DNA of 64,000 nucleotides from Hemiscyllium ocellatum (taxonomy: Eukaryota): assembly GCF_020745735.1 (NCBI RefSeq), contig NC_083422.1:16058001-16122000 (forward strand), written 5' to 3'. Made by a program: the position numbers and the translations under genes. The notes beneath the pieces are model-generated. The model was not told the DNA's origin and made no database searches. It saw nothing but the letters and a program-made list of their open reading frames with translations. Positions 3,675 through 39,230 of the stretch are shown one piece after another. Positions within the stretch are counted from its first letter, which is position 1. Every line of letters begins with the position of its first letter.

Positions 3675-4022
3675 GTAAGAGAGATTCTCATTGTAAATAA
3701 CAGGGATAGTAATAGTATCTGCTGGAGCTCTTTGGAGACATTCCTTTTTCAGAATCTGTGGGTTGTGGCAGCACATACACACTGTTACTGTTGGAGAAAT
3801 TAACTTTCACCTTTGGTGTTACACCAGGGCCTCGAAGATGCGGGTTTCAGCTGTTTGAGGCCTCAGGATTTTACCTGAGCCCTTCTTGTGCCAATGCTGA
3901 AGAAAATGTAAGGCTGGATGCTAGAGATACCTGGGATTGTGGTGTTAAAATGCATTGTGTCGAAAATGCCAATGAATGATTAGAAAAAAAAAGCAATAAA
4001 TCTTTCCACCTGTTTCTTACAG

Positions 4023-5463
4023 TGACACTGCAAAGGATTTCCTGAAAGAGAAACTGCTTCAGCTACAATGTCACTTCACGTGGACCCTGCAACTAGAGGA
4101 TATGGAGTGGGATGATTTGCAGGAACGATTAAATTACACAATTGAGGCTGACATTGTGCAATATAAAGTCATGCCTTACAATCTACTTACTTTTGTCAAC
4201 TGTGTACGAGGTAAACATGAGGAGGCATTCGATAATTTGTGGGAAGCTGAGAAGATTCTAAGGAAGGATCACAAGTCGAATGTTGAAAAGTGGAGCATCG
4301 TCACCTACGGAAATGCAGCCTGGGCCTATTACCATGTGGGAGAAGTGGCAGAGGCTCAGGCCTACCTTGACAAGCTGGAGAGGATCTGCCAACAGTTCCC
4401 TGATGCCTCTCGCTTTACAGCAATGACCCCTGAAGTATATGGGGAGAAGGGTTGGTCCCTGTTGAGATTTGGCTGGAGATATTATGAAGAGGCAAATGAA
4501 TGTATTGAGAAGGCTCTGGAAGCAGATCCTGATAACATTGAGTGGAATACAGCTCACGCAACCTCTCTGTTCCGAATGAAAGAAAATATTGGAGACCCTC
4601 AGTGTCCTGAGCACTGCAAAGTAGTGAAGCAATTACATCGGGCAATGGAACTAAACCCAAAGGACTCTTTTCTCAAGGTCACGCTGGCTCTGAGACTACA
4701 ATATTTCAAACAGAAAGAGGAATCTCACAGATTGTTAGAAGGTGTGCTCCTGAATTCTCCTGATGATCCCTATTTAATTCGATATGTGGCCAAAGCTTTA
4801 AGAAAGGAAGGATCTGTTGAACAATCCCTAGAGATGTTGAAAAAGGCACTGTTGGAAAAACCAAACTCTGGACTCCTCCACCACCAGATCGGTTTATGTT
4901 ACAAAAAGAAACTGTTTACACTGAAGAAAACACCTTATAAATATAACGCTTATGAGGAAAGGAAAAAACTGATTGAACTTTGCAAATACCATTTTCAAAC
5001 AGCATTTGATCATAAACCATCACTTATTTTTGCAATGCTTGATCTGGCAGAAATTTTACAGGAATGTAAAGAATATTCCAAGATTGATGACATGTATGAA
5101 GACCTGATCAGAAACAACAGTCGCAACCATTTGAATAGACAGTTATTACTTTGGAATTATGGATTGTACCAACTGTATGTGAGGAGATCCCAGCCAAATG
5201 CTATTGTTTATTTTAAAGACTGCTTAAAAATCAAAGTGAAAAGAAGCCAGTTTGTGAAATGCCAAGCAAAACTGAAAGAAATTGCTGAAGATCGATTGAA
5301 CGAGTATTCAAGAGACAGTGTTGCCTTTGGCATATTGGGATTTTTGCACCAATTGGATGGCAAGAAATCCGAAGCCATTGGATACTTTCAGAGAGCCCTA
5401 GAATGTGATCACAACAATGAGGAATTTCAGAATGCTCTCCGGGATCTAAAGGAGGCTGCATAA
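4023..5463 (+). CDS. IFIT: IFIT gene A, exon 2 (IFIT1/IFIT5-like TPR protein; spliced product 481 aa, MCDTAKDFLKEKLLQLQCHFTW...)
   Basis: Polypyrimidine tract plus AG at 4021-4022 (ctttccacctgtttcttacag). The frame is open upstream of ORF 4102 through the IFIT motif CHFTW. Other motifs: YGNAAWAYYH, GEKGWSLLRFG, LHHQIGLCY, C-terminal NEEFQNAL. Stop TAA 5461-5463. Confidence 0.95.
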
Positions 5464-6429
5464 ATGTTGTCTTTGATTCACTGGAATATGAATCTGCGTT
5501 TGTAAGAAATGGTTCAAACTTAATTCAAAAATGATTGACAAATTGACCAGTCAAGATTTTCCAGATTTTGGGCAGTGAGTGAAGGGGAATTGTGGGGGAG
5601 GCATTGGAAAATAGTGATGCCCTCACTAATAAATCCTTCCTCCATCTTACATGTGGGCTAACTGACATATGTGGGCAACCACCCCCTTACCAATTTGAAT
5701 TTAAATGTGTTCCTTTTCAAGGCACCTCTCGTGTTGAGAACCCCTCACAATGCCCTGTCTACCTCAGTAGTACACAGCTCTCCCAGTGAGGCTGGGCAGG
5801 CTCTGGGGCTATCGGAACTCTGACCGGCCTGACAGCACTGACACCATTGTGGATGACAAACTGAGGGTGCCACTGATTAGAAGGCACCTCCAAGAAAGTA
5901 ACTGAATGGATTCCTCTGCTGCTGAGTGAGGAGTTCTGGTCTCACTTTTTGATCCTGATGCTGAGGGTCTGTGACAGAGACTTAACCCCCCCATCTTTAT
6001 AATTGCTTTAGTTCACTATTGATTTTGTGTTTCCATTTGCTAAGGTGACACTGATTATAGCCTTTGATTTTTAAGTTAACAGGTTTTGTACTTAATTAAT
6101 TAACTAATTGCAATGATTGAGGCTGAAATAGTCACAGTTGAAAACTATAGTTGAGTGCTGTAAAGGCATGTTATTGAATTAACCTGACATTGTAGATCAT
6201 GCCCATAGGATTTAAATCATTGTTACCAACAGATAAATAAGACTGATTTAATTCTAACCCTAACTTGAAAGCTTCGTGGATGAATGTCTTTACTCCCACT
6301 TGGATCCAGTAAGAAGTAAGTACACTTCTTTGAATAAGCACTTCATAGCAGCACAACCTATTGATTTTTAAGCCAACCGCAGTCATCCCGGGAACATCTG
6401 GATAACAAGGATACTTACGTCAGACTCTT

Positions 6430-22290: not shown

Positions 22291-22606
22291 CCCGAGCATC
22301 CGTGTCATCTGTTAACCCTCCTGATATATCTTTTAGGTGTATTCTGACACCCTGTTCACTTCTCATAGAATTCACTTGATCCCAGCTGCCTATACATATT
22401 ATGCTGCCTGACCTGCTGTGCTTTTCCAGCAACACACTCTCAACTCTGATCTCCAGCATCTGCAAACATCACTGTTTCCTATTCATATAATATGCCTCCT
22501 TCGTTTACTTGAGCAAAGGCATCAAAAACTCTGGTTATCTCGGGTTGCCTACTCCTACCAGCCTTACCTTTCACTCCATCAGGAACATGCTGTCTCTGAA
22601 CCTCCT

Positions 22607-22729
22607 CTGAGATTTGGCAGGAAATATTATGAAGGGGCAAATCAATGCATTGATAAAGCTCGGGAGGAGGATCTTGATAATATTGAGTGAAATACAGCTC
22701 TTGCGACCTCACTGTTTCAAATGAATGAA
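22607..22729 (+). pseudogene. IFIT exon-2 fragment inside intron 1 of gene B
   Basis: Translates LRFGRKYYEGANQCIDKAREEDLDNIE*NTALATSLFQMNE, versus A/B LRFGW[RK]YYEEANECIEKALEADPDNIEWNTAHATSLFR. In-frame TGA at 22688-22690. Confidence 0.85.
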
Positions 22730-23128
22730 TCCAAATGGGGAGCACTGGGAGTGGACTGCCCTGTAGGATCTGCTAACTTTCAAGTTATAAATTAACTCAG
22801 AGCTTCAAACAGCCTCGTTTCAACTGCTCAAGCCTTCAAGATCTTCATTGAAACCCTCCTGTGTTTATTTTCAGGAAGGCTGTGACTCTGTTTAACAGGA
22901 TCATGGGGTTCAAATTCATGATGATTATTTTCAGCATTTTCCCTGTCCACTAATGGTGCTGTCTGTTCATTTTGTTCTATCTGTACATTTCAGATTCTAG
23001 TTGTTATTTGAGTTTTTGAACCACTTATTGGGTTTGCTGAGATTCAGGCTGCCCAGTGTGAAATAGATTGCTAATTTCTTGCTGAAGGTTGCATAAAAGC
23101 AATAAATCTTTCCACCTGTTTCTTACAG

Positions 23129-24569
23129 TGACACCGCAAAGGATTCCCTGAAAGAGAAACTGCTTCAGTTACAATGTCACTTCACGTGGACCCTGCAACT
23201 AGAGGATGTGGAGTGGGATGATTTGCAGGAACGATTGAATTACACAATTGAGGCTGACATTGTGCAATATAAAGTCATGCCTTACAATCTACTTATTTTT
23301 GTCAACTGTGTACGAGGTAAACATGAGGAGGCATTCAATAATTTGTGGGAAGCTGAGGAGATTCTGAAGAAGGATCACAAGTCGAATGTTGAAAAGTGGA
23401 GCATCGTCACCTACGGAAACGCAGCCTGGGTCTATTACCACGTGGGAGAAGTGGCAGGGGCTCAGGCCTACCTCGACAAGCTGGAGAGGATCTGCCAACA
23501 GTTCCCTGATGCCTCTCGCTTTACAGCAATGACCCCTGAAGTATACGGGGAGAAGGGTTGGTCCCTGTTGAGATTTGGCTGGAAATATTATGAAGAGGCA
23601 AATGAATGTATTGAGAAGGCTCTGGAAGCAGATCCTGATAACATTGAGTGGAATACAGCTCACGCAACCTCTCTGTTCCGAATTAAAGAAATTTTTGGAG
23701 ACCCTCAGTGTCCTGAGCACTGCAAAGTAGTGAAGCAATTACATCGGGCATTGGAACTGAACCCAAAGGACTCTTTTCTCAAGGTCATGCTAGCTCAAAG
23801 ACTACAATATTTCAAACAGAAAGAGGAATCTCACAGATTGTTAGAAGATGTGCTCCTGAATTCTCCTGATGATCCCTATTTAATTCAATATGTGGCCAAA
23901 GCTTTAAGAAAGGAAGGATCTGTTGAACAATCCCTAGAGATGTTAAAAAAGGCACTGATGGATAAACCAAACTCTGGACTCCTACACCACCAGATCGGTT
24001 TATGCTACAAAAAGAAGTTGTCTGAACAGCAAAAGACACCTTATAAATATCTTGCTCATGAAGAAAGAAAAAACTTGATTGAACTTTGCAAATATCATTT
24101 CCAAACAGCATTTGATCAGAAACCATCACTTATTTTTGCAATGCTTGATTTGATAGAAATCCTTAAAGAAACTAAAGAATATTCCAAGATTGATGAGATC
24201 TATGAAAACCAGATCAGAAATAAAGATTGCAATGACATAAATAGACACTTAATATTTGGGAACTATGGAATATACCAGCTATATGGGAAAAGATCACAGC
24301 CTAATGCTATTCGTTATTTTAAAGAATGCTTAAAAATCAAGACATGGGGAGAGCTGTCGATGAAATGTCGAGCAGAATTAGAAGGAATTGCTGAACATCG
24401 ATTGAATGAATATTCAAGAGACAGTGTTGCCTTTGGCATCTTGGGATTTTTGTGCCAATTGGATGGCAAGAAATCCGAAGCCATTGGATACTTTCAGAGA
24501 GCCCTGGAGTGTGATCGCAACAATGAGGAATTTCAGAATGCACTCAGTGAACTAATGGAGGCTGCATAA
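23129..24569 (+). CDS. IFIT: IFIT gene B, exon 2 (paralogue of A; spliced product 481 aa)
   Basis: Same acceptor sequence as gene A. Open frame DTAKDSLKEKLLQLQCHFTW... to TAA at 24567-24569, colinear with A at offset 19106. Confidence 0.95.
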
Positions 24570-25829
24570 AATCTGTCTTTGATTGCCTTCCTTTATTCAC
24601 CAGAACCAGTTCCTTTCTCATTGGCTGGTTACAAAATTAATATAAAGCGCACCTTCTGCAATATTTTAGGAATTCTTCATCCACTCTGTCCTTTTATCTG
24701 GTTTTGCCAGCTTCTTTCAAAATAATGAAAGTCCCTGGCTCTTAATACAATATTAAACTTACTGACCCCTGTTGCTTTTCTATTTCCTTCTCACTATTTG
24801 CATCCAAATTAAACGTAATAGGCTACTTTCTGTTCTTTAAAACTAATCAAATCCATTATGTGTCCTTTTATTGAACTTCAATAATATCCTTGATAAATAT
24901 TGACCATCCCCACTCCCTGTACCACCAGCTTCTGTCTTCTCTTTTTCCCTTTCCCTATCGATTTTGAATCCATTGACATCTCATTCCTACTCATGTTTCG
25001 TCTATAATCACTATATCATTAGCCCATTTGGAAATTTGCATTGTAATTCATCAATTTCATTTGCAAGAACCCTTATATATTAACACACTCACTCTCTCAT
25101 GTGATGCTAGTCAGCTTTTCTTTTAACCTCCATCTACTTTCTGCCTGGTGTTCTTTGTTAAGTTGCTGTATGTTCCTGATGCAGGGCTCATGCCTGAAAG
25201 ATTGATTTCTCTGCTCTTTGGATACTGCCTGATCTGCTGTGCTTTTCCAGCACCACATTCTCGGCTATGTTCCTGTTTGTCACTTATATTTGCTGCACAC
25301 CTTCTCCATCTAATATGTTGCTGGTTTCCTGGTAACATTTGCTTTGTCAAAGTATTCCCTTATAGCGCTCATTACCATCCCTACCATGACATTTGATTGA
25401 GAGCTGTTCGGATATAAATCCTTTGAAGTCATGACTTCAAAGCTTGGCCTTGTTGATTAATTTTTATAAAACACAATGATTTATCTTAAACGGGCAGCTA
25501 CTACAATTATCCTCTCTGAATCATATCAAAGACCATTGTCATTTCACTCAGAGTTTCCTTTAATACATTTTATACATGTTTTAGCTGGTTGTCAGTGAAG
25601 CTTAAATATCCTGATCCTGAAGAGAGTTGGAACAATAAAACTCAGTGCAAGGAATTTGATACCTCTCTCCTCTGTTGTATATTTTAGTTGGTGTCAGGAT
25701 ATATGGTATGCAGCTCATAAAAATTATCTCATTGATAAGATTCCATTGTAATCCCAAAACAATGAATTTTTTAATGGAAGTCCAGTTATTGTTGTGCACC
25801 TGGCGCTGTTCAGAACTAACATGCTCCAA

Positions 25830-36300: not shown

Positions 36301-38406
36301 TGTGAGTACCTTTTCCTAGTTTCAGGCTCATTTGCACATTCAGGAAGCATTTTCATGTGATTCATGGCAGAACAACATAAATCCGTCGTAAGACAGAATG
36401 ACACACATTCTAATCAAACAACTCACCATTGGAAATTGATTTGAAGTCAAGAAAGGAATTCAGTAAGTTTCCAGCTGATCTGTATTATGAGGTAGCATTG
36501 TTAGAATTTCAATAGTACTTAAATTTACATTCAGACAATTAAATAAGGAGCTTGTTTTCTGCCAGCAATCATTACAGAGAAATTGAATTCCACAGAGCTG
36601 GGATTGTTATTTTGATTTCTTCTTGGGATGCCAGCATCCTTGGCTGGGCAAACATCTATTGCCCCTCTCAATTCCCATTGTTGTGGCGATGGTACAGCAC
36701 CTCTTTATCTGTTTTGTGCTGTAGTTACACCCATAGTGCTTTTACACCCATAGTGCTATTATGGAGGATGTTCCAGGATTTTGGCATGGCCACAGTGAAG
36801 GAATGGCAGTATAGTTTTAAATTAGCGTGATTTTGAGGGGTTCAATGCTATTGATGCCATTATCCTTTTGGATGGAACAGATTTCATGTTTGAAAGGGAT
36901 TGTTGAAGAAGCCTTGATGTATTGTTTCCCTACCTGTTGTAAATGGTACACATTGTGTACTAACGGCAGAGGGTGTGAATGTTAAAACTGTTAGAGAGGG
37001 ATGCTTTATCCCGAATGTTCAGAGCATCATTGTAACTAGCACTCATCCAGATTGGAAAGTATTCCTGACTTGTGCCTTGCAGATGGCAGACAGTATTTGG
37101 GGGGTCAGGAGGTGAATTAATTGCCACTGCAGTCATAGAGTTTCTATGGCTGGTAGGGTTACATTTCTCATTAATGCTAACTTCTGGAAATGTTAACAGT
37201 GAATGATTCAGTGATGGTAATGTCATTGAATATCAAAGGGAGATAGTTAGACTCTTTTTTGTTGGACACAGTCATTGATTTTGTTTATAAACATTATTTG
37301 CCACGTGCTAGTGCAAACAAAGAGCACGTAAGTTAAGAACAGAAGTAGTCCATTCAGTTCCTTTAGTCTACTTTGCCATTTATAGCTGATCTAATTAGGG
37401 TCTCTGATCCAAATTTCCTTTTACCTGTAATAGCCATTTATTTCCTGCTGGTCAAAACTATATACGTCTTTGCCTTAAAAGATACTCGATGATACCTTCC
37501 CCCCATCCATTTCCCAGAGAGCTCTGTGGGTGATCAAATTCTAAAGGCTCATGACTCAGAAGAAGCAAATGCTCCTCATCTCCATCTGAAATGGGAGAAC
37601 ATTCATTTCTAAAAAGGTATATCTTAGTTTGAGCCCTAAGGGAGACATCCTTCCAGCATCCAGCTTGTCAAATCTCTCCGATTCCATACCTTGATAAGGA
37701 CACCTCCCATTCTTCAGAACTCCAGTGGAAGGAGCCCCAGCCTGACGCATCTCTCCTCAGGAGATAACCGCCTGATCCAAGGTATCAGTTGAGAGACCCT
37801 CCTCTGAACTGCTTCACATACACTTAAATAGTGCATACAATCTTTAATATCCAGCTAAAGCAGTGTTCTATCACCTCAAGAATGATATAGTGGAAAGTTT
37901 CCATCAGGATGAGAATCAGTTCATGGACAATAGCCTCTTTGACTGGTTAATGAAATGCTTTTCTGATCAGCTTTCTGTTTCGCAGATACATTCTCTCTCG
38001 GTGTGTTTGAAGCACGGTCTGTGTGGAAGAGCAGCTTGATAGTCCAGATTAACAGAGAGATACAGGACTAGCATGAGGGAGGAGGGGTGAGTAAGAAGGT
38101 TAAATGGCCAGAGTAGATTAAATGAGGGGCCTCCATTTCAGAATGGAATGTAACATGAAACACAGAGGCATTGGGCAAATGAGAGGCAGATTATTGACTT
38201 GTACCACTGTACTTCCTTAACTTATTGAGGGTTCATATGGTTGAAGCTTTTCTGAGCACTGAGTAAGAAGATTAAATGGCCAGAGAAGATAGTAAGTACA
38301 CCAGCAAGCAAAAGGAGAGAAGTGTGTGAACAGCCAGGACTTTGTTATGCAGAGCTGTTTGTTGAGATGATCTTTCTAAGGTTTCTACGAGATGATCTTT
38401 CTAAGC

Positions 38407-39230
38407 TTAGCTTTAAAACTACAGGAATTCAATCAAAAGGAGGAAGCATCCACATGAGTTGAGCGAGCGTGGCAGAGGTCCCCATGTCATCCATATGTAC
38501 TTTGTTATGCAGCAAAGTTTTACTGAAAATTCAGTAATAAAGACAAATCATTAATGCTGCTGAGGAAAGCATTAGCAATTACCCCAAATGCTGCCTTCCT
38601 GTACCATCAAATAGGTCTATGTTACAAAAGCAAGCTATTGCACATAAAGCTTCAAACAGAAATAACCCTCACAATTCTACCAATGGAAAGAAAATGGAGT
38701 TGATTAATCAATGCAAGTACTATTTTTAAAAAACAGTTAAGCTCATGCAATCATTTATTAATCCACAACCGCATCTTGCAGTAATATATTCAATAAATGA
38801 AGAGCTTCCAGAAGCAGAGAAGATCTACAGTGATCTATTGAAACTGGAAGATATTTGTCCCGAGATTAAGCAAGCGATACGTTTGCAGGTTGGGTTATTC
38901 GAACTGAATGTGAAAAAATCCAAACCCACTGCTATCATCCACTTTGAGGAAGTAATGCAAGTGAACTATGATTCACTGGAAAGAGAAAGGTGTCGAAAAA
39001 TCTTGGAGCAGATAGCGGAACGCTGATTTCGCTGCAATCCCAGAGACAGTAAGGCCTTTGGCCTTCTCGGGTTCAAGTATATGGGAAGCATCATGACGCT
39101 ATTGAATACCATAAAAAATACCTTGGAGTTTGATCCTGGCAAGGAAGAATATCTAAGTGCTCTTTGTGAATTATGTCTTTCCATCGAGGTCAGAAATAAC
39201 CACTCCAGTGAAATACGTCCTTCCATTTAA
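38407..39230 (+). pseudogene. IFIT pseudogene (C-like), 3' portion of exon 2
   Basis: LALKLQEFNQKEEAST*VERAWQRSPCHPYVLCYAAKFY*...FLYHQIGLCY...DSKAFGLLGF...DPGKEEYLSALCELCLSI. Stops at 38455, 38524, 38727 and 39024 plus frameshifts. The N-terminal ~215 codons and the acceptor are missing. Confidence 0.9.

Follow-up and report, generated by a model that had tools for sequence, protein, structure and literature searches.

A 64,000-nucleotide (nt) stretch of Hemiscyllium ocellatum (epaulette shark) DNA (the window, within which all positions below are counted) carries two genes of the antiviral IFIT family, A and B, whose long coding exons are alike at both ends and strongly different in between. 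We regard A and B as very probably old duplicates in which interlocus gene conversion re-homogenised the first two-thirds and the last ninth of this exon and spared the central block. We observe a step in synonymous divergence (dS) along the exon, flanks that cannot be aligned, trees that conflict between parts of the gene, and a B-type block that persists across shark genera.

The two exons have the same orientation and are 19,106 nt apart; each provides 479 in-frame codons that align one for one without gaps (Table 1). Both open at the third base of codon 2 behind an identical acceptor, TTTCTTACAG/T; the methionine and part of codon 2 lie upstream, which gives 481 residues. In the usual IFIT layout exon 1 gives the ATG plus two more bases, and the position and phase of the acceptor in A and B fit this two-exon arrangement. 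The annotated IFIT1-like protein of H. ocellatum, P0001, begins MC+D and is matched at 100% by the translation of 4024-5460 in a protein search. Relatives of A carry the names IFIT1-like or IFIT5-like in their sources, and the matches of A to human IFIT1 (E = 1.3e-94) and IFIT5 (E = 2e-93) run over the full length, nearly without gaps; such full-length similarity places A and B in the IFIT family.

Divergence along exon 2 of A and B

Codons 3-299 (the N-part) differ between A and B at 19 of 297 residues and 35 of 891 nucleotides, codons 300-425 (the block) at 41 of 126 and 82 of 378, and codons 426-481 (the C-part) at 5 of 56 and 13 of 168. A preliminary description of the window had reported such a mosaic of alike scaffold and divergent centre; its hand counts of about 20, about 41 and 5 amino-acid differences were nearly exact, and the swaps that it quoted (VKRSQFV/TWGELSM, LLW/IFG, FTLK/SEQQ) are all found in the alignment. 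Its coordinates for the block, A 4915-5292, are closely matched by a two-breakpoint maximum chi-square scan that was blind to them and sets the divergent segment at A 4909-5280, codons 298-421, with a chi-square of 107 where none of 200 permutations exceeded 26. By nucleotide differences the block is separated from the C-part (Fisher p = 4e-5) and the N-part from the C-part (p = 0.04).

A conserved core divides the block into two modules, codons 298-318 and codons 343-425. Module 1 reads FTLKK..N.Y..K in A (alpha type) and SEQQ..L.H..N in B (beta type). Sliding 60-nt windows give 63-87% A/B identity in module 2 and 93-95% at the centre of the core, which is conserved across every shark compared. 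A compensated frameshift behind codons 407-413 was considered and rejected, a gapped alignment giving no convincing shifted register. The N-part holds no unusually long identical tract: its longest identical run is 99 nt, near the ~90 nt expected by a rough estimate from 35 differences in 891 nt, and recent short conversion tracts within it were rejected on these figures.

Synonymous sites show the same partition. By the Nei-Gojobori method dS rises from 0.092 in the N-part to 0.577 in the block and falls to 0.238 in the C-part, and synonymous differences separate the N-part from the block at p = 3.6e-8 (Fisher). Against copy C, a further IFIT gene in the window, dS of both A and B is saturated in every region (1.3-2.1); thus, the N-part is not intrinsically slow. 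The ratio of nonsynonymous to synonymous divergence (dN/dS) is 0.30 in the N-part, 0.34 in the block and 0.19 in the C-part, and positive selection is neither needed nor visible in these pairwise values.

The similarity of A and B is limited to 3989-5478 and 23095-24584, which take in 34 nt of intron and ~15 nt behind the stop codon. Positions 3989-4022 are 100% identical to their partners and identity further upstream is ~0.3; beyond the limits of 3989-5478 ungapped identity is at chance level. The sole collinear intron remnant recovered by a sensitive search is ~62% identical, with a Jukes-Cantor distance of ~0.5, near the dS of the block. The step in dS, the unalignable flanks and this remnant together argue that the block and the flanks hold the true age of the duplication. 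The comparisons indicate that the N-part, and less clearly the C-part, was overwritten after duplication, and that the divergence of the block reflects age and not accelerated protein evolution. The preliminary description had proposed that conversion keeps the scaffold alike with the block left out, and had set a test beforehand, in which a step in dS along the gene speaks for conversion and a flat dS with high dN for selection alone; the observed step, the flanks and the conflicting trees described below, with significant approximately unbiased (AU) tests, bear out conversion against selection alone.

Block types in other sharks and competing explanations

The relatives compared were P0003 and P0004 of Chiloscyllium punctatum, P0002 of C. 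plagiosum and four outgroup orthologues. Two close relatives of A occur only in hemiscylliid sharks (the C. punctatum proteins, plus P0002), and Scyliorhinus, Mustelus, Pristiophorus and Heptranchias have one full-length orthologue each, at 68-71%. In the block, B and P0003 form a clade (99/97) and differ at 5 of 126 residues (96% identical), as against 41 of 126 between A and B; the B-type block therefore predates the genus split. Over codons 300-332 the alpha pattern of A is shared by P0004 and P0002, and the beta pattern of B by P0003. P0003 already has 11 of the 13 B-derived states in the block. A relative-rate asymmetry within the block was rejected (11 A-derived against 13 B-derived states).

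The N-part gives a different tree. P0003 and P0004 are nearest to one another (0.034; 97/94), all three Chiloscyllium sequences form one group (90/88), and at the base A and B stay without a resolved order. AU tests on the N-part reject the groupings of B with P0003 (p = 0.0002) and of A with P0004 (p = 0.0097); on the block they reject those of A with B (p = 2e-5) and of P0003 with P0004 (p = 8e-8). Between the genera, the beta block differs by 4% and the N-part by 8%.

A related species (organism B) provides contigs that run collinear with locus B, its intron and 3' flank included, with 3.4-6.6% divergence in the flanks, and locus B with its block therefore predates that split as well. Their differences from B, which serve only to judge evenness along the gene and not to date conversion, amount to 2.8% over 23260-24109, 3.3% over 24080-24439 and 3.1% in the last exon piece. 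The 24 nucleotide differences on the contig fit poorly with the ~21 amino-acid differences between B and P0003 and may reflect another species or a mix of paralogues. A 1430-nt contig from X17, probably an RNA run (organism C), was compared with 23127-24568; it is 7.8% different from B over 23249-24232, less than 85% alike over 24233-24365 and 13.8% different in the tail, a profile as would be expected of an alpha-type transcript.

The preliminary description had called the block hypervariable, which misleads for the B type in view of its five differences from P0003. The term fits one type only, the beta block being frozen and the alpha block changing. The blocks of A and P0004 differ at 42 positions. 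At 19 of these A agrees with the beta type, including five at which the A state is absent from the outgroups and P0004 is outgroup-like; at 11 P0004 agrees with the beta type, and nine of the 11 are A-specific and clustered at 359-369. These counts argue for continued change in the alpha lineage alongside a frozen beta block.

The C-part of A is at a distance of 0.054 from P0003 and 0.179 from P0004, and it has the beta-derived residues F442, Y456, N466 and N472, at which P0004 retains ancestral states. This points to a beta-to-alpha conversion of the C-part in the Hemiscyllium line; C. punctatum keeps a mammal-like pattern in which the whole 3' third is private. P0002 is a mosaic over A 300-425, combining an alpha module 1 with a beta module 2 and a beta-like first exon, and its alpha-to-beta switch falls within the conserved core (codons ~333-343). 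A beta gene with an alpha module 1 argues that the two modules can be exchanged separately.

In the history that we regard as very probable, A (alpha type) and B (beta type) are old tandem duplicates of one shark IFIT subfamily, split before the Hemiscyllium-Chiloscyllium separation. Interlocus conversion then overwrote the first ~890 coding nt of exon 2, reaching 34 nt into the intron, and also, earlier or less completely, the last ~170 nt, with the beta copy as the most likely donor; the central ~380 nt retains the original deep divergence. Conversions that erase the block may have been selected out, as the two blocks would confer different RNA or partner specificity. Alternatively, such conversions may fail mechanically, ~78% identity blocking heteroduplex formation.

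Several points weigh against this history. Across species, its evidence comes from comparing proteins and from counting differences on contigs. Support for grouping A with B in the N-part is weak (54/22), and on synonymous sites alone the C-part and the block are not significantly different (p = 0.076). The block of A is 33% different from that of P0004, and a clade of the two is weakly rejected (p = 0.022); the alpha lineage appears to have a further, unexplained history. Finally, the 3.9% divergence of A and B in the N-part (dS 0.09) is not lower than the 2.8% between B and the related species. Homogenisation in Hemiscyllium would therefore be about as old as the genus split, and on these sequences it is neither recent nor demonstrated as ongoing.

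It is highly improbable that there was no conversion and that A and B are of uniform age, with the block more divergent only through diversifying or positive selection on a specificity module. Radical swaps and multi-nucleotide codon changes, notably at codons 407-413, and the A/B differences at the positions aligned to human IFIT1 362 and 366 would suit such selection; yet synonymous divergence is six-fold higher in the block, at a dN/dS of 0.34 compared with 0.30 in the N-part, the flanks are unalignable although the dS of the N-part is just 0.09, and the beta block is 96% conserved between genera. The positive selection that the preliminary description offered as a cause of the block thus finds no support. 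We also consider it unlikely that A and B are recent duplicates, one of which lately imported its block, then the converted part, from a third divergent paralogue. The IFIT cluster does continue past the window, and neither the beta type nor P0004 is a clean fit for the A block. Against import, both block types are present in Chiloscyllium (alpha module 1 in P0004 and P0002, the beta block in P0003), locus B and its flanks are collinear in the related species, and the flanks of A and B do not align. A donor within the window was rejected, copy C being 44% identical with saturated dS and the fragments at 38401-39173 and 22607-22732 not block-like.

A much more serious candidate, though still the less likely answer, accepts conversion and lets the block escape mechanically: at ~78% identity mismatch repair would abort heteroduplexes, and no functional difference between A and B would be required. 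Conversion tracts do stop where identity falls, the switch in P0002 sits in the conserved core (codons 319-342), and dN/dS is ordinary. Mechanics alone would sit poorly with a beta block that has changed less between genera (4%) than the N-part has (8%), an argument that this very sequence is strongly constrained; with the different net charges of the block (+7 in A, +1 in B) and of its helix 21 segment (+2, -2); and with the recurrence of the breakpoint region in mammals, where the 3' part sets specificity. Hardly any weight can be given to an assembly artefact, whether a collapse or a chimeric join of two copies, although at 23684, 23692 and 23694 contigs of two samples that otherwise follow B have A-type letters. 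With 35 differences remaining in the similar parts, collapse, raised in the preliminary description as a possible source of the pattern, is contradicted. Short-read contigs from two samples and two studies of the same organism have zero differences to B over 23915-24105 and 24080-24484, bridging both borders of the block; B is therefore not an assembly chimera. All sampled words of the B block (100%) occur in four runs, and the B-type mosaic is seen independently in bamboo-shark proteins. Read-contig bridging covers the block borders of B, and A is supported by its identity to an independently annotated protein. Old duplication followed by conversion around a spared block is the reading that we retain.

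The A-type patch in B merits a separate description. At 23684-23694 (B codons 187-191) the contigs follow B at 10-13 diagnostic sites and carry A-type G, A and A at the three positions, changing residues 187, 190 and 191 from I..IF to M..NI. Outgroups share I at 187 and F at 191 with the allele of the assembly (I..IF), which therefore looks ancestral. Either a short A-to-B conversion tract is segregating here, or de Bruijn contigs of a two-copy region have yielded an artefact through bubble popping.

Position of the block in the IFIT fold and other features of the window

An AlphaFold2 model of A (predicted local distance difference test score 86.9) has 24 helices in the same subdomain order as IFIT5 and IFIT1, and the predicted fold agrees with the all-helical TPR solenoid of IFITs (pivot helices 15-16; subdomain III, helices 17-24). 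On this model the block comprises the end of helix 15, helix 16, TPR7, TPR8 and most of helix 21, and the homogenised tail corresponds to TPR9 and the capping helix. An earlier placement of the block at the pivot helices and the start of subdomain III was roughly right in location and needed correction in start and extent: the block begins only at the end of helix 15 and spans most of subdomain III. Most of pivot helix 15, including the residues aligned to IFIT5 H287/Q288/L291, falls in the homogenised part. The IFIT RNA tunnel is lined by subdomain II, pivot helices 15-16 and TPR7-TPR8, helix 21 follows, and TPR9 is a separable tail module (bioRxiv 10.1101/152850; PMC3950709). By homology, the block would form the tunnel's far wall and its 3' exit.

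Among the contact or mutation-sensitive residues listed for IFIT5 (PMC9677429), the positions aligned to K150, Y156, R186, Y250, Y254, K257, R260, H287, Q288, F339 and K415 are conserved or conservatively replaced in A and B, and the counterparts of T37 and Q41 are R and T in the shark pair. Differences between A and B concentrate in helix 18 and the loop after it, helix 19, the loop before helix 21 and the first half of helix 21; the charge difference of the helix 21 segment noted above arises over codons 407-425. Shark residues 359 and 363, which correspond by alignment only to human IFIT1 362 and 366, are M/I and L/Q in A/B and sit in a cluster of A-specific changes at 358-371. In primates, IFIT1 residue 366 is fast-evolving, and 364 and 366 jointly set restriction of Venezuelan equine encephalitis virus (PMC12543323).

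Codon 255 (A 4780-4782; B 23886-23888), aligned to the triphosphate-binding R253 of IFIT5, encodes R in A and Q in B; Q is also found in the three Chiloscyllium proteins and the four outgroup orthologues. A has regained the arginine found there in IFIT1, in IFIT5 and in the consensus of shark IFITs.

The window yielded no exon 1 for B, nor are the N-termini of P0003 and P0004 (Gnomon) encoded in it; exon 1 of A probably lies beyond the window limits. A second contig from X17 continues for 61 letters without alignment upstream of 23127, which is what splicing at the predicted acceptor would produce. No canonical interferon-stimulated response element (ISRE) occurs between 5464 and 23128, or upstream of A inside the window. 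None of the RNA runs of the organism contains B, which says little on expression with only two small runs available. The protein search returned no B protein, though an 86%-identical match would have been listed; this makes it probable that B lacks an annotation as a normal-length protein-coding gene.

Two further IFIT pieces lie on the plus strand. One sits in the intron, ~400 nt upstream of B exon 2, and is old, as it is covered by the collinear contig of the related species; the other, at 38401-39173, is probably a pseudogene remnant. On the minus strand, an ISRE-like GAAACTGAAACA at 57592 could belong to the promoter of copy C. A tandem ISRE, GGAAAATGAAACTGAAAGG, is present at 53948-53965 (+), and ATGCT/GTA follows 160 nt on, at 54109; together they resemble the promoter and mini exon 1 of an IFIT gene on the plus strand, with exon 2 further downstream. 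Repeat pieces of very high copy number, 22363-22483 and 25146-25266, flank B exon 2. Their word depth of millions in all four runs, other species included, and many 'opposite strand' and 'goes back' joints mark them as dispersed repeats.

Table 1. IFIT features of the window and elements of the AlphaFold2 model of A
Feature	Position	Strand	Partner, basis or comparison
IFIT A coding exon 2 with stop codon	4023-5463	+	Open reading frame and acceptor; protein P0001, 481 aa
A homogenised 5' tract (34 nt of intron, codons 2-297)	3989-4908	+	B 23095-24014; 3.9% nucleotide divergence
A block module 1 (codons 298-318; end of helix 15, loop, start of helix 16)	4909-4971	+	B 24015-24077
A conserved core in block (codons 319-342; helix 16, start of helix 17)	4972-5043	+	B 24078-24149
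A block module 2 (codons 343-425; TPR7, TPR8, most of helix 21)	5044-5292	+	B 24150-24398
A re-homogenised 3' tract (codons 426-481, TPR9 and capping helix 24, stop, ~15 nt beyond)	5293-5478	+	B 24399-24584; 7.7% nucleotide divergence
IFIT B coding exon 2 with stop codon	23129-24569	+	Intact 479-codon frame
IFIT pseudo-fragment, 42 codons, in-frame stop	22607-22732	+	69% identical to A residues 121-162 (tblastn)
IFIT fragment, ~residues 193-449	38401-39173	+	DNA closest to copy C, 69.5% over 38407-38932
IFIT copy C coding exon, 470 codons, intact	51745-50336	-	44% identical to A
Helix 15	residues 285-304		AlphaFold2 model of A
Helix 16	residues 309-332		AlphaFold2 model of A
TPR7	residues 337-366		AlphaFold2 model of A
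TPR8	residues 371-404		AlphaFold2 model of A
Helix 21	residues 410-429		AlphaFold2 model of A
TPR9	residues 434-463		AlphaFold2 model of A
Helix 24	residues 468-480		AlphaFold2 model of A

Comparison with mammalian IFIT1 and IFIT1B

In mammals, recurrent conversion affects the 5' two-thirds of IFIT1 and IFIT1B, synonymous sites included; orthologue divergence is even, and a recurrent breakpoint falls in the pivot, some two-thirds of the way along the gene (Daugherty et al. 2016, eLife, PMC4887208). In that study the 3' partition begins with human base 907 and the tract in cat runs as far as base 948; in cat the private C-terminus carries the functional difference (PMC4887208). It is the part past the pivot that distinguishes the mammalian paralogues. 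The preliminary description had seen in the shark pair an echo of this recombination, and the parallel holds, including the breakpoint in the pivot.

Both systems consist of tandem IFIT paralogues. The 5' two-thirds of the shark pair are homogenised at synonymous sites too (dS 0.092 against 0.577, p = 3.6e-8), and orthologue differences, taken from contig counts, are even along the gene (2.8%, 3.3%, 3.1%). The shark breakpoint, at codon ~298 of 481, lies at the boundary of subdomains II and III, as do human bases ~907-948 (codons ~303-316); shark and human numbering coincide there by alignment, which puts the shark breakpoint within ~5-20 codons of the mammalian one. The 5' tree follows species and the 3' tree follows paralogues, in the sharks at the protein level, strongly for C. 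punctatum and weakly for A + B of Hemiscyllium.

Unlike IFIT1 and IFIT1B, the shark subfamily is shark-specific and orthologous to neither of them, and its place in a separate expansion argues for an independent occurrence. The last 56 codons are homogenised again in Hemiscyllium; the private part is an internal island and the 3' third is not conversion-free. The shark island also differs in having two separately exchangeable modules, as P0002 illustrates. The pair adds a new shark case, marked by its extra 3' tract and its two-module island, to a process known from mammals; we found no paper on gene conversion in shark IFITs.

RNA-bound human IFIT5 and IFIT1 (PDB 4HOR, 5UDI, 5W5H) are matched by A over the full length (E 1e-93 to 1e-94). 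By alignment, A also has the R253 of IFIT5, from which B and the rest of the subfamily differ in having Q. Helix 18 of primate IFIT1 has the specificity residues 364 and 366 (McDougal et al. 2025, eLife, PMC12543323); shark residues 359 and 363, aligned to human 362 and 366, differ between A and B. This correspondence is by alignment only, and the shark positions carry no signal of positive selection here.

These results warn that whole-gene trees of shark IFITs will mis-assign orthology and that selection scans will be confounded by recombination. A, B, P0002 and P0004 are natural chimeras with which to ask which helices set RNA or virus specificity. One may speculate, with more doubt than confidence, that sharks and mammals independently reached the same modular IFIT pair, in which the cap/triphosphate pocket (subdomains I-II) and the TPR9 tail are pooled by conversion and TPR7, TPR8 and helix 21 stay private for target specificity; the frozen beta gene would act as sentinel and the changing alpha gene as explorer, with conversion maybe still segregating, at which the A-type patch in B hints. 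A pivot breakpoint in two independent lineages argues that the split reflects how IFITs are built, with a common pocket for the RNA 5' end and a variable wall in subdomain III, and it extends the mammalian IFIT pattern across ~450 million years to a separate IFIT expansion.

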